NCBI GenBank assembly: GCA_030704615.1
Contig: CM060734.1
Coordinates: 48,546,001-48,610,000, forward strand
DNA from: Takakia lepidozioides
Taxonomy: Eukaryota; Plantae; Bryophyta
DNA length: 64,000 nt
Direction: 5' to 3'
Shown here: one piece after another, positions 1,856 to 59,372 of the stretch
How positions within the stretch are numbered: the stretch's first letter is position 1
Layout of the letters: each line of letters begins with the position of its first letter
Made by a program: the position numbers and the translations under genes
Notes under the pieces: model-generated
What the model saw: the letters and a program-made list of their open reading frames with translations, nothing else
Told to the model about the DNA's origin: nothing
The model's database searches: none

Positions 1856-2317
1856 ACTTGGCCCGACCCCCAACATAGCAAACAACTACTCACGCTGGCT
1901 CCGGCTCTCAAACCACTAATGAGACACGCTACTAGTGCATGTGCCAGCATGTTGAAGACACAAGTTACAAGCAACTAGTCAATTGCTTGTCACCGGACCG
2001 ACATATTAGTAGAAGTATCTAGAAACTGGAACTATGTAGAAAGTCAGCTAGAACTAGAACTATCTAGAAAGCCCACGCTAGAAAGTCAATCCTTAATTTT
2101 TGGACCCTTCATTTCATTAAATAATACAAGTGGCCTTAATACATTGGCCCCCTCTTTTAACTCCTGGACCACTCTAGAATTAACCAGGCCGAATGAAATT
2201 GCTCTACATATTTGAACCTTAACGACATTGAGTCATGGTTTGAGTCATGAAAACCATGACTCTCCAAAAAAAGAGTAAAACAAACCATGATTTGGCGTAG
2301 CGGTTCCCAAACCTTTC

Positions 2318-2409
2318 CATGATAGATCTCAAAAGTCTCCCTACCAGATCCATGCTAAGCATATCCTGCAATCAGGGTGTTCCATGAGACCACATCTCGT
2401 TCAACCATA
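2318..2409 (-). pseudogene. PPR motif fragment continuing the reading interrupted at 9412
   Basis: Reads MVERDVVSWNTLIAGYA*HGSGRETFEIYH, the natural continuation of ...KDACQVF(N) that breaks off at the TTAA at 9408-9411. Confidence 0.85.
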
Positions 2410-3555
2410 TGAACCCTAAACCCTAAACCCTTAAGCGCCCACCAGGCCCGTTTTGGGCCTTGCTTTTTGGTTTTTTGTCCTTGGATTTCTCAGATGTCAA
2501 TCAATTGAGCCCTTTTTTTTTTCCAGCGGATGCCGTCCACTTGTCGGACATGAATCCAATGAGCGATTGATGGGATTTTTTGGTTAGGGTTAGGATTTTT
2601 GGTAGCCAAGGCGGTGGGGTCTGCTTTGCGGCGTGAGAGCAGCTCTCCCGCGCTTTTTGGGCTCTTTTACCTTGCGTGTTTGTCTTCTTGGCCTCACTGT
2701 GCTCGTGTTTCGGGAGCTCCGCTGTGGTGTGTGTATGCAGGTGGCCGTTGCGTGGTGGCAGGGGGGCCGTTGCCCATAGTGTCGTTGAGATTCCTACATT
2801 GTGGTTTTGCTTCATTACAACTCAATGGTGGGTCAATGGTGTGTGGGAAGTCTATGGTCACTTCCTAATGCGCAGGTGTATGTCTTGGCTGGTGCAGCAC
2901 TCCGAGATCTGGTTGTGGGTGCAGCCAGCTCATGTGTGGTAGTTTTGTGATATGCCAATTTTGCGTGCAGGCTTTTGAGTGTCCTAGGCTGTAGTGGCAG
3001 TTGTGCTTGGATTTTTGGTGACTGATCAGTTCGTAGCTAGTACTGCTGCAACAGAACATAACCAGCTCTGGTAGTATGATGCCAGTTTAGTCCTTGCCAT
3101 AGTGTAGTGTGGAGGAGGCATAGTTGCATGTTCAGGTCTTGCTACAGGCATTTACTATGAAAAGACTAAGTTGCCTTCATGTTCAGCGGGCGTATGTGGT
3201 AGAGCAGGTTAGTGGTTAGTCGCCTTGTCAAGTGGGGGTGAACACAAGGGGGGGATCCTCCCCCTTGTGTTCATGTGCGAGCTGCCAGTTGGGGCAGGTT
3301 ACTGGGTTCAATTCCCACTCACACAATTGTAGGGCTCTGTGCTTGGATGGGTGGGATTGTGGAATCTGTTTTATGCTCGATGTTGCACTTTGCTCAAGCC
3401 TGCTGTAGCAATCACACACGGGGACTTGCTGTATGTAATCCATGAATGGTTGGGTTGTACACCCTCAAGTACAAAGCACCTCTCAAAATGTGGTGGACAG
3501 CCTTTTCAATTCAGTAATCAGTGCTGTTTTGGGTAGCCCTCTTGCTCTAGTACTG

Positions 3556-3649
3556 TGGTCATTTTATGTGTGAAGGTCTACAGCCCTATTGGTCATGGTT
3601 GATGGTCATTTTATGTGTGGAGGTCTACAGCCCTGTTGGTCATGGTTGA
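3556..3649 (+). repeat. 47-bp tandem duplication (2 copies)
   Basis: TGGTCATTTTATGTGTG(A/G)AGGTCTACAGCCCT(A/G)TTGGTCATGGTTGA occurs twice in succession. Confidence 0.85.
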
Positions 3650-4039
3650 AGGGTGCTCCAGCAAACATACACCAAACAAACACCATGGCATGATTCAGGA
3701 AACAAAGGGAGCTACATGCAGGACTATGTCATTTTTCCAGCACCCCAAATTCTCAAAATCTGACCCCCTCACGTTTGACCAAGTGTCAACACCATGATTT
3801 TTGTCCAAATCACTTTTTTCTTTTTGGGCTGGGTGGAAGGACCCACCAGGATGAACATGGAGCAGTTTCAGCCCATTTGGCTTTCATCTTGTCATTCAAT
3901 TTTGCACTGGCGTAGAAAGTAAATGTAATTTTCTTGGGTGGGGTCCAAAAATGGACCCCACATTCAACTGTGGCGTTTCGGCGATCTCCCTCTGATTGGC
4001 CTCACATTTGGTGTGTCCCTGCACGAGGTAGGTACACAC

Positions 4040-4538
4040 CAGTGTTGTTCTGGTATCAGTGTTAGGACATACCAGACCGGTCCTGGTACCAGACGTATCA
4101 CAAAAAAATTATACCAATCTGGTCTATATAATGGTGGATGTATAATTCTCTACATACTATGAGTATGAGTATCATGACCACAATATCAGCTGGTACGAGA
4201 TATCAATTCTGGTATCATTCCAAAGCCATCTTGAATTAGAAGTTTATCACTAGCAAGTATCAAGTGAAAACAAATACAATATAAATAAAGAAATAAATAT
4301 ACATAAGTACAAGTATGTAGGCATATATACACATAAATTAATATAGTATACATACCAGAGTAAATGAGGAAGACGGCGGGGAAGTACTGGTATTGAGGCT
4401 GGTATGAAAAAACTGATACTAGCCTGGTCTGGTATATGACCCAGTATTCTCCCAAATGATACCAGACTTGGTCTGGTATCTAATACCAGTGCATATACCA
4501 GTATTTTATACCAGTCCTTCACCTATATACCAGACCAG
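4040..4538. mobile_element. Probable hAT-like MITE nested in element A
   Basis: Starts CAGTGTT, is packed with ATACCAG/CTGGTAT motifs, and is flanked by the direct repeat GTACACAC (4032-4039 and 4539-4546). The right TIR is poorly conserved. Confidence 0.5.
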
Positions 4539-4664
4539 GTACACACCTAAAGTGCGGTCAAAATCTTAATTTTTTTTGTTTTCAAGATTTTCTGAGGTTT
4601 TCCTTGCGCAAGGGTCTTGTTTTTGAAAAAAATCAAACTTTGTCACTAGGCGCTTAAGGGTTAA

Positions 4665-7600
4665 CCCCTACTGGACGAGTCGACCTGATTCGGGTCGGTT
4701 GGATATTTCGACCGTCGGTGGGCCCCTTGGATGAATTTGGATGAAGATGGGCCCTGAACGAAAGTTGTAGCCCACGTCACCGATTGACACAGAAAACTCG
4801 GGGGGACCCCAAAAATCGACACCAAAAAAGGGCCCGGGAACGCCCGACGTTTCGGCGTTCCACCCAACAGGCAACTGAAAAACTAACAACTACCAACCGT
4901 CACGAATGTGGCCCATCTGTGTTCAAGCTCCCCGTGAGCTCCTGCTTTTCCTTTGAATGCAACGAACCCAAACCACACACCACCCTGAAGACATGATCCA
5001 TGAACTGGGGGGGAGTTGAACCCCCCGATCTGCCCAGTGTGCAGACAGTCCCCCCCCCCAAGCAGCAAGCAGCACCCCCAAAACCACAACCAGCAAGCAT
5101 GACTGCTGCCCCCCCCCTCCCCCCAAAAAAAAAAAACTGTGAAACCACCCAAACACAACGTACACACGCCAACACTGAAGGACCCCCATCACCTCCACAG
5201 CCCCTCAACCAGCAGCAGCAGATCCCCATCACCCCCACAGCTTGTGAACCATCACTAGCCCTTCCCCCATCACCAAAACAGCCCACAATGAGCAAGCAGT
5301 AGACCCCCATAACCCCCCCACTCCCAAAACTGCCCATCAACCAGCAGCAGCATGACCCCCACACCCCTCCACTGCCATTGAACCGTCACCACCAGCCCCC
5401 CATGACCCCCACTGCCCATCAACCAACATGGACACACACACAACCCCCCAACCTGAGAAGAACCCATACCCACCACAGATCAGAGATACCCACACCCCAC
5501 GCCCCACGCACACACGCCATCCACAGCCTCCAGCATACCTGCATGTAGTCCCACACCCTGGTGAACCCCCACCCACACAAACATATGCACACACAAAGAA
5601 AGAAGACAGTGCAACAAGCCAGAATTCAGTCACCTCAAGGCATGCCGGTGTGCCTCATTCCAACACCGCCCAAGGTACAAGTGGTTGCCATCGCAGCCAG
5701 GGCAGTAATGGTGAGTACGAACATGGCACATGACACACACTCGCCGCCGTGTGGTGTGAAGGCACTGATGCACAAACGTGCATTTTGAATCCTCCGTGGT
5801 GTCAATGTTGTCAGTGCAGCAACCCCCTATCAAACCATATGCCATAGCCAGATTGAATTGTAGATGGGTCATGGCCCGACGCCCCTTCCTTCTCTCCATT
5901 ATAGAATGCAACATATACGCATTCACTAGCGTGGTATCCATAAGAAAAAAAAATAGACGATGCCACCACTTCTTTGTGCGCAGCTACAAGCTGTACGCAC
6001 CCCTAAGCTGGTCCTGCACATCCACCCCTCGCATGTACGTTTGGTATTGAACATGTGCAGGTACGGATGGCACAGACACTCTCTGGTTTCCCACAAAACG
6101 GCGTATAGTCACAGGAGAGGAAGGGCTGCAAGCTGGCCTAGCTGCAGATGACAGTAAGAATACACCCTTCTTGTCCCACCACAACACAGCAGCCACCTCC
6201 CTGGACTCATGCATCCTGTACCATGACTGCCCTTACTTGGCAGTCTTGGATTTTTTCATTTTTCAGCAAAGAGGGAGGGAGACCCTTTCTACCGTGCCAG
6301 TGGCCCAAGTGCCAAGTTTGGCCATGTCATATAGAAGCTGGATCCCTGTAAAGTAATTATCAGTCACAATGACATGGCCCAAACCATGCAGCCCGTCGGC
6401 CAGCCGGGTGACCACATCATAACCTTCTCCTTTCCCACTTTTCTGGCCCTCCTGCATTCTTACCAGCATACATTGAAAAGTCGTAGACATATGAAGTCTC
6501 CGAGTCAGCCAAGGCCCACACCTTGATGCCCCATTTGCATGGTTTCTTAGGCATATACATCCTAATTGGGGAGTACCTCTCCTTGTAACGGATCATCACC
6601 TCGTCGACAGTCACCATTTTGTTCAGATTCCAGAGACTTTTACACCTATCCACAATCTCCTCACACACCCACCTACGCTTTCTGAGCTTATCATAATTCC
6701 GACTCTTACGATCTGCCACCAACGTGGCGTTGTCAACAAGATGCAAACAACGGAGTATGGCCTCATACCTATCTCGAGTCATCACTTTGCGGATGACAGG
6801 ACAAGAGAAGAATGTCTCCGAGTGTTGCCAGTAAAATCGTGTTCGGGGCAACTTTTTCATGCCCATGAAGACACAGACTCCAATCCAAGCCCTGAGCTCA
6901 GGAACAGTGAGCTCTTTCCACCGAGGCCCCCCATGAGTGCCCGTACCAAAAGGTTCAACAGCATAACGATTGGACTCCCTACATATTCACCCAAGCACTT
7001 GTCGCCTCCAAAACAAACCAAAAAACCAAATCGGAGTGAGCCCTTCATCTCAGGCAGACAGGGACCAGGTTGAGGGCCAAAAATGCAGTTCTATCACTCA
7101 CAAAGTCAGAGCCTGCGTTGGTTTCCCACGTCTTCGCCTTGAACATCTCCACAAAATCGGCCGAGATTTCCTCATCACACTCCATATCAACCACCTCGTT
7201 TTCCCAGTCTGCTTCGTCAGCAGAGTCGCCCATGTACCCATCGTCACCCTCAAAATCCTCGTCCATGTCGGAGAAGGCCTCATTGTGGCCCAAAACAGGA
7301 TTAGAAGACTTCTCACCAAAAGGAACCAGTGCACCAGTGTTGGGATGCATGTCCCCCAAAGCAGCCCGACCGACGGCAAGCATGCTCCCAGTACCCAGAG
7401 GCCTGCCAACACATCCCACAACACCCGAATTCACCACTCCCTTATTTTTTTTTCCTCACCACACCTTTGAGAGGTGCTGTCACACTTGCAGGAACCGACC
7501 TCTTTGCACGAGCCAACTCCTTCAGACGCCTGACTGTCGACATCGGGCCAGACATCATCTCTCAAAACAGAATTCACAACGTCACTGAACCCCTCCTTAT

Positions 7601-9407
7601 CACCTTCCTCTCTTCTCTCTCTCCAACCAAGAACTAGAGCCACCTGGCGTCTAAACAGAAAGCGAAAATTGTGAGGACGAGGATGGCGAGGCCAACGACT
7701 GGCAAACGGCGGTGGAGGCAAACTACAGAGGAAGGCAGGAGACAGACACCCCAATATTACCTTGCACTGCTCGGGAGTGCAGTGCTGCTCCTCAAGCGCC
7801 CACTCCCTTATAACCTCCGCGGCAGCTGCAAGCTCGGGTGGGGGTGACGGTGGCTCAGGCACAGGAGCGTCCTTCCTCTTTGGTGCCATACGAATCCCTG
7901 AGACCGACAGAGATCACATGAAATGAATGCAAGCCCTCATGATGAATCAATGCAGATGGCCCATCTTCCCCAATTGCCCCAAAGAAGGATGTACCTCGGC
8001 GAATTTCGCAAACTCTCCAAAACCAGCTGCAAAATGAAACCCCAACACACCACACTCCCTTGCAACCATCCCCTACCACACAAAACACAGAGCCCAAATG
8101 CATAAAAGCATTTCACAAAACGACATGCAAGAAAAAATGACAACTTGCTTATTAATGAAAATTCGGCAGGGCACAAGAATCTAAACGCCAAACACTCAGC
8201 CCTAACAGCTGCGTTAATGCAATCACACCCCGAGCTGTAATGTCTAGAACACACAGCAGGAAACGGAACAGCTCCCGCCGCTTCGAGCTTGGGAGAGGTA
8301 AGTCGCCATGACCTGAAAATGAAGCCCAGAAATACACCCCCTTACGAAGCGAATGCGGGCAATCCACGGAGGATCAAGCAAAACATGCACACAAAAGCGC
8401 CAAGGAAATGCGAGAGGGGCCACGATTTGCAAGCTCCAGGAACCTAAAAGCTGTGTCATGTCTATGAAGAAGCTTCGAAGTTCTTCAAAGGAAAGCCTCA
8501 TATGAGCGTGCCCACATGATATTGGAAGGAGACGACAGATTCATCCAAATCTTACTTGTCTGCTGACATCACTCTCGAAGATTATGTGTGGGACTTGTTA
8601 CTTCTGCCCTCTCATCTTCTCTTTACTCATTTTGGGTCGCATGCGCCATCTATGGGCCGAACAAAATGGTGTGGACCCAAAGGGGGTTGTACGGTGGAAG
8701 TATAGGCGCGCACTTGGTAATGGACAAAGGAGGAATACAAGAAAGTGATAGCCACCATAAGTGCTGTCCGAACACCTTTTGTAGCCGGAATTGTCTACCG
8801 GCTCAGGCAATACATGGCCTGAGCTGGGATTCAAGTAGAACTACACCTACTTAGAAATCTCTGCCTGCATTTTGGTTAGAATTCAAAAATTCTTTTTGGA
8901 GGTAGTAGGAAATCATATGAAGAACAATTCCACCGTTGGAATTCTGGTTCCAATGAAAATTTCGACCCCTATGGCTGAATTACAGGTCAATTGAAGCAAA
9001 TAGTGCTTTTTGACCCCCCCTGTTTTCCCATACAAAAGAACCCTATGCAGATTTTGGAATTCTGCTTTGCAAATTTGGGGCAAGTTGCTTTAGGTGCCTG
9101 AGAATTGGAATGTGGTTGGGGTCTTGCAAGGAAAAAATATTTTTTCGGTCCAACTGCCTGGTCAAACCAATTTTTCCCTCTAAAATTGGAATACACTACA
9201 GATTTAGAGCTTACCATTTTGTTATAATCTTCCTAATGACACGGTGAAATGGGCTGAAAGTCTTACAGCAGGTGCATGAGGTAGGTAGCGTCCTTTTCAT
9301 ATGGTTCATCCCTGTGGATGTTTCTTAGCTGGGAGATATACCCTCATCCGTGAGGGTATGTGCTGTTTTGGAGTGGGCCCACCAAAAACAGCCTCGTCCA
9401 TTAGGGG
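4665..9407 (-). mobile_element. piggyBac DNA transposon B (full-length ends, decayed transposase)
   Basis: TTAA (4661-4664) + CCCCTACTGGACGAG ... CTCGTCCATTAGGGG + TTAA (9408-9411). The TIR matches at 14 of 15 positions and encloses the transposase. Confidence 0.92.
5630..7889 (-). pseudogene. piggyBac transposase (DDE_Tnp_1_7-type) with several frameshifts
   Basis: Acidic N-terminal region, RESNRYA, ELRAWIGICVFMG, MTRDRYEAILRCLH, catalytic motifs VDEVMI / KPCKWGIK / TDNYFT / GVDVQDQ, then TTLVNAYML and a C-terminal Cys-rich domain (CVMC...CPGC...CWNEAH). Probable start MAPKRK at 7889. Confidence 0.92.
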
Positions 9408-9411
9408 TTAA

Positions 9412-10946
9412 ACACTTGACATGCATCCTTCGTGTTCCCACATTTGGCACAACAAGGGCAGTCTCCAGGACACTATCCGGCACAATTCCAGCTTTGCTGA
9501 TGTCAGCATGGACCTCTTTCCCCTTTTCCAGGGCTCTAAGGGTAGCACTTGCATTTAGAACACAAGTAAATGTGACCCTGTCAGGCATGACTCCATACTG
9601 TTGCATGCGCTCATAGATTTCCAAAACCTCACTGCCACATGCATGTTGAGCATATCCTGCAATCAACACACACCATGAGACCACATTTCGCTGAGCCATG
9701 TTATCGAACACTTGACGTGCATCCTTCATGCTTCCACATTTTGCATACATGTCAACAAGGGCATTATCCAAATTCAAGTATGACGCAATCCCAGCTTTGA
9801 TAATGTCAGCATGGACCTCTTTGCCCTTTTCCAGGGCTTCTTAATTCCCACACGCATTGAGCATACAAATGAATGTGACCCTGTCAGGTGTCAACCCTTC
9901 CCGTTGCATTTGCTGATATATTCTGAAAGCCTCGATAGCACATCCACGCTGTGCATATCCTGTGATTATCGTGTTCCATGAGACCAGATCTCGTTTAGTC
10001 ATACTATCAAAAACTTGACGCGCATCCTGCATACTTCCACATTTGGCATACATGTCGGCAAGGGCAGTCTCCAAATTCATATATGACGGAATTCCAGTTT
10101 TAATGATGTCGGCATGGACCTGTTTGCCCTTTTCCAGGTCTCCTAGGCTGGCACATGCTTGCAGAACACAAATGAAGGTAACCCTGTCTGGCATCATCCC
10201 TTCCTGTGTCATCTTCTCATAGATGTCCAGAGCCTCCCTACCACACCCATGCTGAGCATATCCAGCAATAATGGTGTTACATGAGACCACATTTTTTTCA
10301 GCCATACTCTCGAACACTTGGTGTGCATCCTTCATACTCCCACACTTCCCATACATGTCGACAAGGGCATTCTCTAAGTTAATATATGGCAGAAGTCCAG
10401 CTTTCATCATGTGAGCATGAACCACTTTGCCCCTTTCCAGTTCTCCTAGGCTGGCACATGCCTTGAGAATGCAAATGAATGTGACACTGTTAGGTGCCAT
10501 CTCTTCTTGTTGCATTCCCTCATAGATCTTGAAGGCCTCCCTACCACACCCATGCTTGGCATATCCAGCAGTCATTATAGTCCATGTAAACACATCTCGT
10601 TGAGGCATTTTGTCAAAACGTCCCTCCACCAAGCTCCCACAATTGGCATCCATTTTGACCAGGGTGTTGAGGAGAAAAATGGTTGGCTTGAATCCACTTT
10701 GGACAATGTGGGCATGGACCTGCTTCCCCTCCACCAGGCCTTTCGTGTTGATGCACTCCTCCAAAACACAGACATAAGTATCAGAGTCTGCCTGAATGCT
10801 TTGTTGGTTCAAAATGTGCAGTGCCTGTTTGAGACGACCTGCCTTACAGAGTGTCTGTACATCCCTGCCAGTGGCAGAAGATTTCTTCCTTATTCCCTCT
10901 CTGAGGCCCTCTTCAATGGCAGTGATGAGGTACGCCCTTCGCGAGT
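9412..10946 (-). pseudogene. PLS-class pentatricopeptide repeat protein (organellar RNA-editing factor type), disrupted
   Basis: Repeated P-L-S motifs (NALVDMYGKCGSMKDAHQVFESM / NVVSCNTIIAGYAQHG / PDRVTFICVLQACASLG). In-frame stop at 9841-9843, frameshift near 9445, and interrupted by piggyBac at 9411. The 5' end is uncertain. Confidence 0.9.
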
Positions 10947-38665: not shown

Positions 38666-41600
38666 GGTTATGGGCCCACACACGGTACTTTGACAAGTGA
38701 TCCATTGAAAGGAACATAGATTTCTACAAACAGTCTGAAAGGATAGTAGTTTATTTTTTAGGAATAAACTAAGCAGGCGTTGAGGCTGGTCGTGCGACTG
38801 AGCTACAGATTTAGTGTTGAGTTTTCGTTTTACTGAGCATAGTAAGAGTCTCAACAGTGTAGATGATGTAGATTTTTTTTATTTCTCGTACTTTCTTGGT
38901 TTTCAAAGGAATATTGATTGAGGTTGTTTCAGATTCTTGCAACATCGTGTAGACATCTTAAAGTTATAGATGCTGTAGAACTAGACAACTCAACATGAAT
39001 AACAAGGAAGAGGTGAAGGAAATCGCCGCTGTGGAGAAATTCAATGGAGAAAATTATCATCTGTGGAAATTCCACATGCAGTTCATCTTCCAGGCCAGAG
39101 AGCTATGGTCAATCGTGGAAGGGACATAGACGTTGAATGCAGCAACCGACAAAGCTGCATGGCAGAAGCGTGATAAAGTGGCTACGATAAGCATCGTGCA
39201 GTCCATCGACAGAGTTCATATGGTGCAGCTTATTAATTGTACTACAGCTGCTGATATGTGGGGAACTCTAAGCATGATACACAACCAGACGGCAGAAGAG
39301 AACATTACACACTGCAAGAGCAATTTTACAAGTGCCATATGCAAGAGCAGGATAGCATTGCTTCGTACACTAGTACCATCTCCGCTCTAAGAAGAAAGTT
39401 AAACGACCTAGGAGAGAGCATTAGTGAGAGACAATTGCTTACCAAGATTAAGGTCAGATTACCACCCAGTTATGATCCATTGTTGCTAGCCTGGGACAGT
39501 GTACCTGTTGCAGAGCAAACACTGAAATCATTTCTTGCTAGACTTCTAAAGAGAGAGATAACAATCAAGAGCAGAGCAGATGATCAGTCATTCTTTGACC
39601 AAGAGAGAGACGAGGCATTCTTTGCTGGGAAATATGGTGGTAGTGGAAAACAGAACCAGAAGAAAAACCTCACACCAAAGCAACGCAATGAGAGAGCACA
39701 AAGAATCACTGAGCTGAAGAAGAAAACAACCTGTCATGGTTGTGGTGAGGAAGGACATTGGTACAAAGAATGTCCACATTCTAAGAAGAATGAGAGAGGT
39801 CAGAGTAGCAGAAGTCATAGATGGCCAACTCTGGAGAATGCAGTTCAAGGTCGATGTACCCGAAGGACAAGCCAATGCAATCACCAGTGCAACTACTGAC
39901 ACTAGAAGAGGTACTATCAAAAGATGGCATGAACGTTTGGGTCATGTCCATTTTGATATGATTAAGAAAATGGAGAGGGAGGGTTTGATTACTGGTTTGA
40001 AGTTTACAGACCAAGACTCCGATGATCTTTTCTGTGTTGGATGTGCACATGGGAAGAACCATAGGCAATCTTTTCCTATAACTCATGAGCGACAGAGAGC
40101 TGAGAAGCCAGGACAATTCTATCACATAGATGTGTGCGGTCCCATGAGTGTAGCTTTGGTAGGAGGAGCCTTATACTTTGTGTTGTTCAAGGATGACTAT
40201 AGTGGATACACGTTGGTGTACTGTATTAAAAAAAAATCTGAGGTTCTTTCTTGTCTCAAGAAGATGATAGCTGAGTCAATGAGGGAAACAGACAACAAGC
40301 TTCTCAAACTAAGGAGTGATAGAGGAGGAGAGTACACTGGAAATGTGGTAAAATCTTTCCTCGACCAAGAAGGCGTTAAACATGAACTTACTTCACCTTA
40401 TACTCCCGAGCAAAATGGAGTAGCAGAGAGAGAGAATATGACACTTATTGAGAGTGTTAGGTGCATGATTCATGGTCGAAACATTTCTTTGAAATTTTGG
40501 GGAGAGGCTGTTCAGACTGCAGTTTATGTTCTTAACCGAACTGGCTCACGAACCCTAGAGGGGATAACTCCGTTACAAGCATGGTGCAACCGAAAGCCTG
40601 ATGTAGCACACATGCGTGTTTTTGGAAGTGATGCTTATGTGCACATTCCAAAGCAGCTTCGAAGCAAATTGGACTTTAAGAGCAGCCAATGTATTTTTCT
40701 TGGATACAGTGCTGAAAGTAAAGCGTACCGCCTCTGGGACAGAGTGAAGAAGAAGGTTATTATTAGCAGGGATGTTATCTTTCATGAGGACACACATGTC
40801 CATACAGAAGCTGCAGTATCACAACAGCAGCCAATGCAAATTTTACATCTCATTGAAGATGTACCCCATCAAGTTGAGGGGTCAGCACAATAAGTATTGC
40901 AAGGACCTACGGTGCCTACACCCGACTTTGTTTCACAGGCAACCGAGACATCCATCGAGTTGGTTGTTGATCTCGGAATCGCTCAAGAGCATGTTGATGC
41001 AGACAGTGGGAGCAGTGGAAGTTCTTCTATTTTTTATCAAGAGGAGAATAGTCATCATGAGCATGAAAAGATCGATACTGAGGTACCTAGAAAACGGTCA
41101 CGTGGACCCCCAAATCGTTTTGTGACTGGGTAGCCCAACCAGGGACATATACTTCCATTGGATGTGCAGTACAACAATTAATAGAGGAACCTCAGAACTA
41201 TGACCAAGCTATTGCTTCTGACCACAGAGAAGAGTGGGATAAGGCAATGACAGATGAGTATCAATCCCTGATAAAGAATGCTACATGGGAATTATGTGAG
41301 TTGCCCAAAGGAAGAAAGGCTGTGAAGAGCAAATGGATATATAAAGTGAAATGTAAATCTGATGGAAGCATTGACCGCTTCAAGGCTCGGGTGGTTGCTA
41401 AAGGATATTCTCATGAATATGGGATTTGACTATGAGCAAACTTTTTCACCTGTTGCCAAGTTTGACTCCATCAGGACACTCTTATCTATAGCTGCAGTGA
41501 AAGATATGAACTGCTACAGTTCGATGTGAAAACAATTTTTTTGCATGGGGATTTGGAGGAAGAAATTTATATGGAACAGCCACGGGGTTTTGAGGACAAA

Positions 41601-42805
41601 AAGAACCCAGGCTTAGTGTATCGACTGCTCAAAAGTATCTATGGGCTGAAGCAAGCAAGTTGTGCCTGGAACACCAAGTTCAATGAGTTTCTTATCCAGT
41701 ATGACCTGCAGCCTACGACAACAGATCATTGTGTGTACATCAATAACAAGAAGCCCCCTGTGCTTGCAATTGCCATCTTTGTGGATGATGGGCTTGGAGG
41801 TTGCAAAGATAAACAGAGGCTGGATTATGTGGTTGATCATCTCAACAAGGTTTTTGAGGTTACAACAGGAGCAGCGGATTGTTATGTTGGGCTGCATATC
41901 ACCCGAAACCGTGAGCAGAGGATGATCTTCATTGATCAAACTCATTATATTTTGCGCATACTTGTGAAATATGATTTTGATACAGCCAACACTGCTTCTA
42001 CACCCATGGATTCCAATGTGCAATTGAACTTGGATGCTCATCTTCAAAATGAAGAACTAGATTTTCCATTTTCTGATATTGTTGGGAGCATCAGGTTTGC
42101 AATGCTAGGGAGTCATCATGATATCACATTTGTTGTGGGAACAGTTGCAAAATTTTGTACCAAGCCGAAGCATGTACATTGCAATACTGTCAGAAGGATC
42201 ATGAAGTATGTACGAGGTACATCCCATTTCAAGTTATGTTATGCTGCTGGGGATGAGGAGAACACTTTGATGGCATACGCAGATGCTGATTTTGCAGGAG
42301 ATGTCGATGACAGGAAGTCAAGAAGTGGGTGTCTTGTTTTTGAACGGAGCACCAGTTACTTGGATTAGCCGTAAGCAGGCATGTGTAGCTGGATCGACTA
42401 CCGAAGCAGAATATGTCGCTGCATCACTGACATCAAAGGAAGTTGTGTGGCTGAGGAGACTGTTGGAGAACATTGGGTTTCCACAGACTGCTCCTACCAT
42501 GATTTTTGGTGATAACCAGAGTGCTATAAGGCTTGTGTACAACCCCGAGTACCATCGTTAAACCAAGCATATCGATATACGATATCACATGATTCGTGAT
42601 TTTCAGATCCGTCGCTTGGTTCAACTGTGGTACATTGGCACTCATGACCAGATCGCATATATCCTTACAAAAGCTCTACCAGCAGACAAGTTCAATCGTT
42701 TTCATTTTCTGCTTGGGCTTACCTGCGATCAATGAGTGGAAGGTTCACGTTACATTGATCAGTTTTTCTTTGATCATGAGTTGGTGCATCCACAATGAGT
42801 GGAAG

Positions 42806-52598: not shown

Positions 52599-54430
52599 AG
52601 TACTCCAATTCAGAAGATTCCTGATTTGCCCAGAGATCCATGAACGGGTGGCAAGAGAGGCTTGATAAGCGCTCCCTGCGCTTCACTTGAACAATTACCC
52701 AACTAGACACTCTTGTGTTGCCTGCTGAAAGCTGAAGCTGGAATTTGTTCAGTGTGCTGTGCTAGTTGTACTTCATGGATATTTTCAATGTACTGATGCC
52801 CAGAAAAATGAAAGAAAAGAAGGTCCAGAAGTATATAAGCATATTCCAGTAGTCAAGCCATGTTTTTCTCTTTCTCTTTATTGTTTACTGATTTGGTTGT
52901 TGGTCTAAACTCTGACTGTAGACCAACTTTGACTGGACGTTAAACAAACTTTACTTTACTTTACTTTACTTTACCAACTCTAGTAAAAACAAGTGGAAAC
53001 TACGGCTTTCCGGACTGTCTGGAGTCAAAACTAAGTTACACTAGTGAGCTCATGGACAAAAGCCTCACTGTGCCAGGCTACAGTCAGAGCCTGGGCTCAA
53101 TCCTTCACAGTCTGAATACATTAACGAAATTGTGTACCTATGCAGCCCCGGACAACTAAAAAGATAATTAATGGAGACCCAAACTACTACTCAACCTGAT
53201 TTTTAATTTTTGATTTTTAATTTTTTTAATTTTGAAAAGGAATCACATTACAAATCCTCACTTGGACTCCTCTAGCTTTACTGCTTGTTGGATTATTGTC
53301 ACGATTCTCCGCGCGTTGGGCCCTTATGCAAACCTTCAATTGCTGAATAAACACTTCTCACTGCATGCCGGAATCGTCGACCAAATGAGAGTCCATGGCG
53401 GCCTTCGGGCCTAACAAGGGTTTTAATCTTTTTCCCTTCAATAATTTCAATAAAGCTCTCAAGGGCTTCCTCCCGAGTCCCCTTTCTCTAAGCTACCATA
53501 CGGTAATGTGAAATTATGTTATCATCTTATTGCTCCGCACTGCTACCCACGACTTCAACAAACAATATCCAAGAAAAGTGTGATGGATTCAAAAAAGAGG
53601 CTCCGCAATACCGCTGGTGCACGATGATAGGCACTTATTTTACCCTCAAATTACTTTAGGTAGATAAACTCTTTTGAAAATTGTTCCAACCACAAAAGAT
53701 AGGCCACATACAGAGCTTTCCAATGATATCTTTACCGACAGGAGTGAACCTAGATCGGTTCACATAGGGTCAGGTTGGTGGGACAAATGCAATATCTCCA
53801 TTTAAAATTGAAAATAAAAAAACATTTTTTAATTTATTTTCGCAAGAAAAGAGGACATAGACCTTGATAAAACTTTATTAAAATCCATTTTAGGGTCAGA
53901 AAATAATGAGAACTGGACGGTATTGCCAACTAGACAAATGTAGCCTATTTGAAGGGCTATCTACTGATGTGTTGAATGGTGGTAACTTAAGGGTAACAGT
54001 AACTGGAATTTATTGTCAATCAACTGCTTTGGTACGTCATGATGGTCTAGTTTCTACCCTACTGCTGGTCAAAATGGTAGTGTGATGATTTCTTGAGCTT
54101 TTGGCCTACACCGATCTTTCTGTCAGCCCTCACTGTCCTATCGGAAGCTCTGTTCTTTCTGTGTTCCTTCTCGCCACTTGGGTCTTTTTATAAAGCTATG
54201 CAGGATCTTCTCATCTGCGAAGGTCCCAAGCACTGAAATTGGGTTGTGGGAATGTCGGTAACAACCCTAAGATCGAAAACCGGATTGTGGGCAGTAGTGT
54301 TGAAGCGCTCAACTCCGCAACTGTCCGGAATTCGAGGGTACTGTTGCATTCTTTGAAGAGGAGAGGTGCAATTGAGTTATGGAAGGATCAAGTGGTTGTA
54401 TGGGCAGCAACCACACTACTGGGCGATCTC

Positions 54431-57400
54431 ATGGATGGCAGGATGGATTGTAAGCGACAATCCAGAGCACAAGATCGGAGGCGGCAACGCCGCAGTAACA
54501 AGCAATGGCAACCAACTGGAGTGCATTCTTCAGAGGGCGACCGAGCAATTGAACAACCGTCTGGAAGAGATGAAAGACAAAGAGATGAGAGCTCATGGCG
54601 TCCCAGTGGAAGTGATGGTGAGGAGGAAATTGTATGGAGTGGGAGGGACAAAACAGAAACTGCAGATTCTGGCAGGACCTCAAACGCCACGGGTCCTCCC
54701 TTCCCACATGAAAATAGTAGAGTAAAGTTCTCAAGCCCAAAGGATGCTGCCAGAAAAGGTCCTTTACCTTCAGTGTCGTCTCAAGAGAGTCGAGATGGGA
54801 CGAATGCTACTTCTCCTGACCAGCAGTATGAGCTACTCGAGCAAGTATTTGCACAACCAAGCTCTGCGGTCAAGAGAGTGCCCAAAGGAAGTGGCGCTTC
54901 AACCCGGGGAGATGACCTTCGTAAGACTAGACCACTTGACTCCAAAGGTCCTAGCAATCCATATGGTGGGAGAAAGATTGGTGCAAATGTTAAAAATGGA
55001 GTTAGAAGTTTCGGAGTTCATTCATGGGACCCGCATAGGAACTCCTATCGAGAGGCCTCACAAAACCAACTTCAGCCTTCCAGTGGAGCAAATGGATTCC
55101 TTTCTGATGAGTATTATTCACTAAGTGGTCCAGTCTCAACTCCTTACTCTAGCGGTGGTGGTGAAGGTGCAACTCCTTCGCTTGGACCGAAAGCATACCA
55201 TTCTCTCTCTCAAGATGAAAGGCGCCACACAGCGAGAGAGGGCAGGCCATTTCCAGACAACATTAGGGTTCAGAGGGGTAACCATGGAAATGTGCTTCCT
55301 ATCCATTCACCACACCACCATCTTCCTGGGCCTCCTCCACATACCAATGTATGTGAAGATGGTAAGAGCGCAGGCTTGCATAGGTCTGCCTTGAGTCAGG
55401 GTATACCACCCAATTTCTTTCGTGATGGTCATAATCATGGAAGCCAGCGTGGTGGTTGGGGTAGTAGTAAGCAGGGTCACCAGTCTCATGATAGCAGTCA
55501 AGTTCCTCAGGATGGGGACCAGAAGCTTCTGGGAAGAGAGCCGACATGTAAACAGGGGGGCCTACCTAGAAGTCAGGGGGAGCCAAGAACAACTGCAGAT
55601 CAACCGGGAGTGTCCGGGGGTGGAAAAGGGAAATTGGAGGGAGGCATGGCAAATCTGAATAAAGAGATAGACAGTGAGTTTGCATTGGATGGAATGACAG
55701 ATGGAGAAAGGGACAAAGCAACCAGGTATAAGCAACTTTCTGCATTGAGGAGAGACCGACTTTGGAGGGCTTCACAAGAGGCAAGTGGGGACATCTTTGT
55801 TTCACAACCTTTTCCTCCCAATCATGAGCGGCCCCAAACAATTAGCGTGGGAGCAAAAGAAGCAGCCTCAATTTCAATTGTTAATAATGGAACAGACCAC
55901 GTGAAGTTACTGGCTGTGAGGATGCTTTTTGTGAATCCGCAGGATACTTTCAGTCTCTCTTTAGCTTCACCCTCTCAAGCACCACCAGTTGCTGGAAGAT
56001 CTCCACCTACCTCTGACGTTTCGTGCTCCACGTCAAAAGGTCCAGGTGTAGCTCTGTCTGGGGGCCCATGGGTGATCAGCCCTGGCTCGCACCTCACAGT
56101 GAAGCTTACATGTGTTGCATCGTCTATGGGCTTGCATAAAGCAGTATTGCTCATCGATTTTGGCACACAAAAAATTGTCAAATATATTTCTCTAATTTGC
56201 GAAGATGAGATTGCCAAGACATTAGCACCTAGTGTGCCTTATGTGCGGTTGCCACAGCCAAGAATTCGGAGCTTTGTCAAGTTTGTCCGTGGAGTACCCC
56301 CTCCCTTGCCTCTCTTTAGAAAGAGGCTGGACTTTTACTCGATTCCACAGAATATCAAGGATGCGATTTTGCGGAAGGAGACCTTGCCAGTCCTCTTGGA
56401 GGGGTTGCGGACAGAAAACTACTGCGCTTACTATTCCACTCTTGAGTTTGCCGAGGAGATTCAGATGGAGGTTGGTTGCCTGGGTCTTCTCTGTAGTTCA
56501 CCATATGGAATATACTTGTCATGATTCTGCTCTTTTTCCTTCTTTTCACTTGCAAGGGACTTGCTATCATTCACCTATGATTTTTCTGGTTTCCAGCTTG
56601 TTTTCTCTAGTTGATTGTGAGGGAACAAACAGGTGGACATCCGTGCCTATGATCTGCAAAATGTCACGATGCGCAAAGTTGGGGTTGAGTATTTGGCACT
56701 CATGGTACCTGGGCTGTCAGAGAGACGTCCTTCTGTTATTTTTAGGGACAAGATCTATGTGAGGCCTTCTGGAAGCACAGCACGAGAGTTTCAGGTGAGT
56801 CTTGAGTCTCCCGTCATGAAGTCTTAAAGATTCAAGTTGTTCTCTCAAACTGAAATTACTTGTCTTTATGATGCTGACAAGGGTGTTTCACAGGCTCATG
56901 ATGTATAATTGGATATACATAATGTTTTGCACTCCAACTTGTCATGGTTTCTGATGTAGGATCATGAGTAGCTATTGACGGAACAGAGCTTCCCCTTTAT
57001 TGTGAATAGAAGCAACTCAGTATTTACTTGTACGGTGTGGGTGATTGTCAGTCTTGTATTCAGTTTGAATACAGCTTTACATGATTCTCAGCAGTTTCTA
57101 GAAGGATATTATGTATTCTTTGCAGTTTTTTAGTGAAGTTTTGCTTGACATCTTGAGTCATTGGCGGTGCGGATCAGGGTTACGTTCACAAGGTGCAAGC
57201 AGATGAAGTTCACCTCAAGTTTAGTGACACTCTTCATGGGATCTTCATCCCTAAATCCCGCTTTGATGTCCGGTTCTCTTTTGGTAGAGTGAACATAAGG
57301 CGCGCCCATCAAGCAATCAATGCAGCAAGACACTTGGTTGACTCTTTTATATTTCCAACTCCACCTGGTCGAACCGAGACAAGTCCTGCAGAGGTGAAGA

Positions 57401-59372
57401 AGATTGTGCCATTCAACAGGGCTCTCAATGTTGAACAAATGAATGCCGTCGCAGAAATCCTCAAGTGCAAAGGGGCCCCTCCATATTTGATTTTTGGGCC
57501 ACCGGGGACAGGAAAAACTGTGACAGTGGTAGAAGCCATTCTTCAGCTGAGAAAAAGTAACCCACAGTCTCGAATTCTTGCTTGTGCCCCTTCTAACAGC
57601 GCTTCAGATTTGCTGTTAGAGCGTCTCATTGGTGCAATTGAAAAGCGTGAGATTCTTCGCCTCAATGCCTACACCCGGAGTCTAGATGATGTCCCCCCTA
57701 ACCTACTACCATATTGTTTGTGTAACGATTCCCTCTTCTGTACCCCTGATCAAGCAGCACTGCTCCAATATAAGGTGGTTGTTTCAACATACTGGAGTGC
57801 TGCCATGTTGGATGCCCAGGAGATAATTGCTGGACACTTTACCCATATTTTCTTGGATGAAGCTGGACAAGGAAAGGAGCCTGAAGCTATGGTTCCCATT
57901 GCCAATCTTGCAAATGCAAGCACAGTTGTGGTGCTAGCAGGGGACCACCAGCAATTGGGGCCTGTGGTTCGGTCTCAGCTTGCACAAAAGTTTGGTCTCG
58001 ACAAGTCCTACTTGGAGCGGATCTCAAACCTGCCCCTCTATTCGCCTGCCTCTCACACTACACCTGGAGAATCTGGCTACAACAAATGTCTGGTGACTAA
58101 GCTACTGAGAAACTACCGCTCACATCCAGCAATTTTAGACCTCCCCTCACGACTCTTTTACAATGGAGATCTAATTGCATGTGCTGACGAGAGCTGCAAC
58201 TCTCTCTCTGATTGGGAGGAACTGTCAAATAAGCGATTCCCTCTTCTCTTTGTAGGAATTGAAGGCCGGGATGAAAGAGAAGGGAGTAGTCCTTCGTGGT
58301 TCAATGCACAAGAGGCCAGCAAGGTGGTGGAGATTGTCAAGAAAGTAAAGGATTATCGACGAAGTAGGGTTAGTGCCAAGGACATTGGCATCATATCACC
58401 ATACAATCAGCAGGTTAACAAGCTTAAGAAAGCATTGGCCGCTCAGAACTTGGGAGAAGTCAAGGTGGGAAGTGTTGAATCATTCCAAGGGCAAGAGAAA
58501 CGTGTGATCATCATCTCAACTGTTCGATCCAGCAAGGAACATGTGGAGTTTGATAAGCAGCACAACCTCGGATTCCTAACCAATCCAAAGAGGTTCAATG
58601 TGGCTATTACACGAGCAAAAGCCCTTCTGATCATTGTGGGTAATCCACATGTCCTCAGTCAGGTAACTCTCTCTCTTCTATTTCCTCCACTTCTGTGAAA
58701 GGGCTACGGCCATTAGACTGCAGCAAGTACAGTTGATGAGTATACGACACTGGATATGCATGTAGCGGCAAATGGGTTGGTGCTGCTTTGAGTTTAGGAT
58801 AACAGTTTGCATTTTGTTATGGAGTTGTAGAAGGGAGTAGGTTAGAGATTTATGATGTAGGAGTACAGTGTCATGCTTATAGTGCGAACTTTGCAATTGT
58901 TAAGGTCTTCTTCAGGGGCCCTGGAGGGATCGAGATCTTCACAGTGCAACGATTTATCCCTTCATTAGAGGGGAGTAAGGTTCCCCTTTTAAGCACCTTA
59001 AGAACCCCATCAGCAGAATTAATTACAAACATTAACAGGATCCAGTATCCCTTGGCTCATCCGTGGTCTACTTTTTCAGATTTTAAGACAGCTATCCTGC
59101 ACTGCACTGATCTCAGAATACTATCAGGAAGTTGAATCAATAAATCTTACTAAGTTGAACGTGACTAACAGGATCGATGCTGGAATGAGCTGCTGCGCTA
59201 CTGTGAGGCCAACCAGTCCTACAAGGGTTGCTCTTCCCCCTCGGAAGAAAAGAGCACCAAAGACAAGGAGATCTATGATAAGTGGTTTGAGGAGGTGGGA
59301 GCCAGTGATGGGCTGAAGACATCAGTGAAGGTGGCAGCTGAGGAACCAGAATGGCCCGATGGTACTCGTTAG
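54431..59372 (+). CDS. SDE3: SDE3/MOV10/Armitage-like UPF1-family (SF1B) RNA helicase, 4 exons (~54431-56470, 56634-56795, 57178-58662, 59173-59372)
   Basis: VPGLSERRPSV, GPPGTGKT, CAPSNSASD, DEAGQ, GDHQQLGP, NYRSHP, SPSWFN, GSVESFQGQE, RFNVAITRAK; last exon DRCWNELLRYC...EPEWPDGTR*. Confidence 0.9.

Follow-up and report, generated by a model that had tools for sequence, protein, structure and literature searches.

Transposons of the piggyBac superfamily encode a DDD transposase that binds terminal inverted repeats (TIRs) of the form CCC..GGG, cuts the DNA at TTAA by way of hairpin intermediates and reinserts the element at a duplicated TTAA. The piggyBac of Trichoplusia ni (T. ni) is about 2.5 kb long. 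Here we describe an element about twice that length in Takakia lepidozioides, located in a 64,000-nucleotide stretch of contig CM060734.1 (assembly GCA_030704615.1, positions 48,546,001 to 48,610,000 of the forward strand; this whole stretch is called the window, and all coordinates below refer to it). Analysis of the window indicates that positions 4665-9407 very probably hold a DNA transposon of the piggyBac superfamily, autonomous in type but decayed in this copy, that is resident in a land-plant nuclear genome. Among proteins of solved structure, those that best match its transposase are piggyBat of Myotis lucifugus (9C0F) and T. ni piggyBac (6X67), with which it aligns at all three catalytic aspartates and shares the TTAA target and the CCC..GGG ends; it differs from both in being distant in sequence, in possessing a 1.5-kb 5' region with two leader introns, and in the pattern of its C-terminal cysteines.

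A 2017 survey recorded piggyBac across eukaryotes 'except in plants' (PMC5381638). A 2025 survey reported piggyBacs in land plants, described a 'Group 4' common to fungi, land plants and algae, and found horizontal transfer of piggyBac to be widespread (PMC13461360); a literature search found no other published report of plant piggyBacs. The preliminary description of the element, made from the letters of the window, had treated a piggyBac in a plant as a novelty, a claim that the 2025 report does not allow. Compared by description only, the Group 4 elements resemble the window element in combining a DDD core with a Cys-rich domain in a land-plant genome; that survey kept intact candidates only, whereas the window copy is dead.

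Ends and target site

The element spans 4,743 bp, with TTAA directly outside both of its inverted ends. Its limits are as follows.

4661-4664, no strand: left TTAA target-site duplication (TSD), also the right border of a neighbouring element, E2
4665-9407, minus strand: the whole 4,743-bp element of piggyBac type, whose transposase lies on this strand
4665-4679, plus strand: left TIR, 15 bp, CCCCTACTGGACGAG, the 3' end relative to the transposase
9393-9407, minus strand: right TIR, 15 bp, CCCCTAATGGACGAG (reverse complement), the 5' end relative to the transposase
9408-9411, no strand: right TTAA target-site duplication, adjoining pentatricopeptide repeat (PPR) coding sequence (..CQVF)

The two TIRs, both of which start with CCCC, agree at 14 of 15 positions, or at 18 of 19 (95%) with TTAA counted. 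When all 64 kb are scanned for the 15-mer with at most two mismatches, the only sites returned are the two ends of the element, against a chance expectation of 0.06. Both marks of the superfamily, TTAA on each side and CCC..GGG terminal inverted repeats, are therefore present, and the TTAA-flanked, CCC-initiated ends with 14/15-bp TIRs of the preliminary description are confirmed at 4665-4679 and 9393-9407. A search of the element for subterminal repeats yielded a single 9-bp inverted motif (GGTGGGCCC), which is within chance expectation. The CpG value of the element (0.52) is close to those of the whole window (0.46) and of a host exon (0.40), so that CpG depletion is uninformative on the element specifically.

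Transposase core and zinc-binding domain

The pieces of the transposase were searched separately, with no exons joined and no stops read through. They are the following.

6420-6986, minus strand: longest open piece, 189 amino acids, in which the DDE_Tnp_1_7 core starts; it includes the first catalytic Asp (TVDEV)
6266-6433, minus strand: core piece with the second catalytic Asp (VTDNYF), placed by profile alignment
5987-6232, minus strand: core piece with the third catalytic Asp (RGVDVQDQ), placed by alignment to piggyBat
5633-5749, minus strand: C-terminal Cys-rich domain, CxxC-x7-CxxC...C-x4-H, aligned to relatives

The Pfam profile DDE_Tnp_1_7 (PF13843), which the preliminary description had named as a check on its assignment, matches two separate minus-strand pieces, at 6417-6866 (E 7.8e-29) and 6263-6490 (E 6.8e-09); in addition, the start of the last transposase piece matches the end of the model weakly (E 0.011). 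Against solved structures, the 189-residue piece matches piggyBat 9C0F at E 1.6e-16 and T. ni piggyBac 6X67 at E 9.2e-14, and its TVDEV aligns to TIDEQ of 6X67, which contains D268. The Asp of VTDNYF is invariant in a profile with nine relatives and aligns to D346 of 6X67, while RGVDVQDQ aligns to KGVDRADQ of piggyBat 9C0F (the GVDxxDQ motif), a position equivalent to D447. By alignment, then, the element possesses the complete DDD catalytic triad (D268, D346 and D447 of T. ni piggyBac).

The last 117 residues can be aligned throughout with the C-terminal regions of relatives (for one of them, P0175, at E 4e-22), and this alignment identifies a C-terminal Cys-rich zinc-binding domain with the pattern characteristic of the clade, CxxC-x7-CxxC-x5-C-x3-C-x4-H, in which the fifth conserved Cys is a Tyr in the window copy. 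The DDD triad and the C-terminal Cys-rich domain noticed in the preliminary description are thus both borne out, the latter with one Cys replaced.

Gene structure and decay

The gene that encoded this transposase is no longer functional in the window copy. Its extent, and the introns that precede or interrupt it, are listed here.

5630-7889, minus strand: transposase gene remnant, from the ATG at 7889 to the stop at 5630-5632
8073-8345, minus strand: 5' leader intron, GT..AG, skipped in a contig from run X7
7898-7994, minus strand: second leader intron, GT..AG, likewise from the X7 contig, ending 8 nt before the ATG at 7889
7559-7760, minus strand: putative third intron, AAG/GTAATA ... TTTTGAGAG/ATG, predicted from the sequence and not from reads

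Lesions were read from a collinear comparison with relatives and from a stop-to-stop map. There are at least four frameshifts (near 7450 in a run of A, near 7085 in a run of T, at 7035 and near 6435) and four in-frame stops (6987-6989, 6263-6265, 6233-6235 and 5984-5986), so that the uninterrupted reading frame of an autonomous element is lacking and the window copy is unable to make transposase. The lesion at 7035 is a 1-nt deletion specific to the window copy, since other copies of the family carry an additional T after this position. A small intron at 7050-7100, considered in place of the frameshift in the T run, was rejected because relatives read collinearly through this segment (..NF.GPPPG.., ..TPI.FF.LFW..). 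A domesticated host gene of the PGBD type is ruled out by the presence of both ends and of the TSD and by the broken open reading frame (ORF). Activity, which the preliminary description had proposed for the family now or in the past, can no longer be a property of the window copy, whose frameshifts and stops are accompanied by the Cys-to-Tyr change in the zinc domain.

The leader introns are known from the X7 contig (record 29; the run is RNA by guess only), which joins 8439-8345, 8071-7994 and 7896-7814; after an equally fitting 1-nt shift, each gap has the canonical GT..AG borders of a minus-strand intron. At least one copy of the family thus seems to produce a transcript from the transposase strand whose leader is spliced twice, if the guess about X7 is right. 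Because the second leader intron ends 8 nt before the ATG at 7889, the ORF that begins MAPKRK.. is most likely the start of the transposase gene, and the putative third intron (donor 7760, acceptor 7559) would join this ORF (MAPKRK..EQCK) in frame to an acidic N-terminal region.

Relatives of the transposase

An exhaustive protein search returned 12,026 relatives at E<=1e-3, 37 of them at E<=1e-30. Sources were looked up for 30 clusters from the best 150 matches, supplemented by contig look-ups and Atlas searches. The closest relatives, 44-52% identical to the window transposase, are metagenome sequences with no named organism among the sources looked up; the top clade is metagenomic and the next tier comes from animals. 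The nearest named proteins are PGBD4-like proteins of animals (Coilia, Actinostola, Leptopilina, Homalodisca, Lineus and Lingula), whose cores are 36-44% identical to that of the window. A tree built from 133 core segments puts the window piece in a clade of 34 sequences (SH-aLRT 100) and the six named animal PGBD4-like proteins outside it.

One member of this clade can be compared with the window as a whole element. Represented by JGI metagenome contigs (L001-L003) and found as the same locus in several JGI metagenomes, this environmental element has TTAA on both sides, as does the window element, and measures 4,565 bp against 4,743 bp. Its TIR, a perfect 13 bp (CCCCTAAAGGACC), matches the right TIR of the window at 11 of 13 positions. 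The core of its transposase (P0001) is 49% identical to that of the window transposase, with which it is collinear in all four pieces. In the tree, it is one of the nine members of the group sister to the window piece, inside the 34-member clade; the node that joins the two has an SH-aLRT of 91. The N-terminal region of the environmental element cannot be aligned with that of the window, and this element, too, is broken after the core. As ends and transposase are conserved together in this relative, it provides independent support that the ends of the window element were called correctly. A conserved upstream accessory gene was considered and rejected, since the N-terminal ORFs of the window and of its relatives do not align.

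A scan of metagenomes with the end motif returned mostly chance matches, together with one short repeat family that has the same end (CCCCTAAAGGACCGGGGG...), and no transposase on any match; because TTAA is part of the search pattern, the scan is no independent test of target choice. TTAA followed by CCCCTAAAGGACCGGGGGTGTTTTAGC.. is found with differing flanks on numerous short contigs, of which several belong to a single JGI metagenome (L012, L043, L046, L055, L068, L100, L101, L114, L118 and L121). These contigs look like a non-autonomous family that uses the end of the environmental relative.

Insertion into a PPR pseudogene

The sequences on either side of the element comprise one other element and the two parts of an interrupted gene.

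2428-4660, no strand: neighbouring element E2, 2.2 kb, non-coding, with perfect 12-bp ends CCCTTAAGCGCC / GGCGCTTAAGGG of the CCCTTAA type
9412-10812, minus strand: upstream part of a PLS-type PPR pseudogene, with a 303-nt repeat period and a frameshift near 9450
2253-2412, minus strand: continuation of the PPR repeat unit, MVERDVVSWNTLIAGYA-stop-HG, with the stop in frame

The right flank reads ..AKCGNTKDACQVF and then TTAA, and is PPR coding sequence. On the other side, the right end of E2 adjoins the TTAA at 4661-4664, which is also the left border of the piggyBac, and PPR sequence resumes beyond E2; no further PPR similarity was found below 2253. In three paralogous PPR units, 6 nt lie between the ..CCAT. 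block and AACACTTG, and in-silico removal of 2413-9407 leaves exactly 6 nt (..CCATATGA TTAA ACACTTG..). Because this removal restores the repeat spacing, the two elements are best regarded as a composite insert at a single TTAA of PPR coding sequence. The preliminary description had placed the element within a PLS-PPR reading frame; the PPR is indeed interrupted at TTAA and does form the right flank, but the left flank is E2, and a stop and a frameshift make the PPR a pseudogene.

The probable history is one in which a PLS-PPR repeat unit received the piggyBac at its TTAA (..CAA GTG TTT AA..); since the same TTAA borders the non-coding E2 with its CCCTTAA ends, either insertion could have been the first. 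Changes that are mostly C>T/G>A, frameshifts and stops would then have accumulated, and the production of transposase would have been lost. Because both ends are still good (14/15), mobility in trans is conceivable, and an intact member of the family could in principle mobilise the window copy. Whereas the anatomy, the family membership, the lesions, the multiple copies and the spliced contig are shown by the data, we infer this history, the mobility in trans and the age of the copy.

What separates the PPR sequence from the left end of E2 is exactly a telomere-type repeat (AACCCTA x2.9, 2412-2431). Within E2, the read depth over 4200-4581 is ~10-20 times that of the piggyBac, which indicates that E2 either contains a high-copy repeat or is one itself. 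At 4040-4560, short repeats of the motif ATACCAG/CTGGTAT, both inverted and direct, form a cluster that may be a nested miniature inverted-repeat transposable element.

Residence in the plant genome

The family to which the window copy belongs is multi-copy and is not confined to one data set. Contigs from the runs of four studies lie on the element, three of the studies being labelled as the same organism and one as a plant metagenome, and the listed pieces differ from the window by ~1-3% (for example, 45 differences in 1,389 bases). In X1, 77 differences are of the kind in which the window has T and the others C, or the window A and the others G, compared with 27 of the reverse kind; this predominance puts the C>T/G>A changes on the side of the window copy. 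Deamination of methylated cytosines in a resident repeat would account for them.

The same 64-kb stretch carries an SDE3-like helicase, PPR repeats, a Ty1/copia element and an aspartic protease. Two of these, and a stretch of the element itself that recurs elsewhere in the genome, have the following positions.

54239-58698: SDE3/MOV10-like RNA helicase gene with large exons, best match 77% identical (unnamed)
39258-42368, plus strand: Ty1/copia retrotransposon with long gag, integrase and reverse transcriptase ORFs
8634-8776, no strand: 143-bp stretch in the 5' region of the element, common to a much higher-copy genome repeat

Among named proteins, the helicase is 62% identical to that of Ginkgo, 57% to that of Adiantum, 56% to that of Selaginella and at most 54% to those of angiosperms; on account of this gene and of the other plant genes on the contig, the host is a land plant. 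The 143-bp stretch has a depth ~30 times that of its surroundings, and its other copies run on, to left and right, into flanks that differ from those in the element but agree with one another; it is therefore a piece that the element has in common with a highly abundant repeat.

Several observations tell against a resident, decayed piggyBac with the structure given here. Pfam zf-Tnp_2 has no match to the C-terminal domain of the window copy. X7 is only guessed to be RNA, and a processed DNA copy could imitate splicing. E2 lacks the TSD expected on its left, where a telomere-like 15-nt stretch (ACCCTAAACCCTAAA) stands instead at 2413-2427, and this leaves the history of insertion untidy. It may also be that the best DNA run comes from the very sample from which the window was assembled, and none of the short Logan contigs displayed bridges the junction at 4661 or at 9411.

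This last result, together with the fact that the nearest named relatives are animal PGBD4-like proteins, is what would be expected if the element were a contaminant contig or a chimeric misassembly in which foreign DNA is joined to plant sequence. We consider such an artefact extremely improbable: both ends adjoin plant-type sequence, each with TTAA; the spacing of the PPR repeats is restored when the insert is removed; the family recurs in data from several studies labelled as one organism, as well as in a plant metagenome; a 143-bp piece of a very high-copy genome repeat lies inside the element; the leader is spliced at GT..AG introns; and the window copy has C>T/G>A changes of its own, as would befit a resident methylated repeat. 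The preliminary description had argued against contamination from the reading frame around the element, and the multiple copies, the spliced leader and the direction of the base changes strengthen that argument. The evidence accordingly supports its principal claim, that a complete-ended piggyBac-superfamily element lies in a land-plant nuclear contig.

Other features of the element

One further repeat lies within the element.

5183-5449, no strand: about six C-rich repeats of 40-51 nt each, in an array that lies 3' of the transposase stop; read on the strand of the transposase, they are G-rich

The units of this array show no significant folding, none better than that of shuffled sequences. 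The presence of a tRNA-like shape, or of another structured RNA, beyond the transposase was also considered and rejected: there is no Rfam match, and a 'tRNA-Pro' called by ARAGORN in the C-rich tract folds no better than shuffles.

Origin of the family

How a resident piggyBac family came to be in this lineage can be explained in two ways, and the published distribution of the superfamily bears on both. In a 2025 screen of 1007 plant genomes that included piggyBac, the recently active TIR elements all belonged to seven other superfamilies (PMC12973397). RepeatMasker annotated 1,230 PiggyBac fragments in a fern assembly (PMC6890710) and 0 in a liverwort assembly.

This patchy distribution in plants, from the 2017 survey that recorded none (PMC5381638) to the absence of piggyBac from the seven recently active superfamilies (PMC12973397) and from the annotated liverwort assembly, favours entry of the family by horizontal transfer from a fungus, alga, protist or animal, followed by amplification, over descent from an algal ancestor. 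The widespread transfer and the group common to fungi, land plants and algae in the 2025 survey (PMC13461360) point in the same direction, as do the divergence of only ~1-3% among copies and the environmental origin of the nearest relatives (44-52% identical), with which a common end sequence is shared. However, no donor lineage was identified among the looked-up sources of the 34-sequence clade, the closest relative is only 52% identical and no recent transfer partner is in hand, and the plant-type leader introns suggest long residence or adaptation. On balance, we give horizontal transfer a little less than an even chance.

That land-plant and algal piggyBacs fall in one group (PMC13461360), and that a fern assembly contains 1,230 fragments annotated as PiggyBac (PMC6890710), would also be expected from old vertical inheritance in the green lineage, with loss in seed plants and retention in this lineage with bursts of activity. 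Such a history would require many independent losses, however; the 30 clusters from the best 150 matches contain no named plant or algal relative, and RepeatMasker counts are unverified annotations. We therefore regard vertical inheritance as rather unlikely.

Significance

Because plants were long believed to lack piggyBac, well-documented plant copies help to fix the host range of the superfamily. The window copy adds little beyond the 2025 report (PMC13461360). What it does contribute is a clean anatomy (ends, TSD, catalytic triad and Cys-rich domain), evidence that the 5' leader is spliced, a connection with an environmental clade whose end sequence it shares, and a case in which two elements of the TTAA type are stacked at the same target.

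A more far-reaching possibility, which we consider improbable, is that the window copy represents a distinct piggyBac lineage, defined by the TIR CCCCTAA.GGAC and by the 34 unnamed sequences, that is native to plants or their close associates and has active, spliced and expressed members in this genome. If this were true, the lineage would constitute a natural plant piggyBac system with precise excision at TTAA. An active member, should one exist, might provide a native plant tool for footprint-free insertion and excision.

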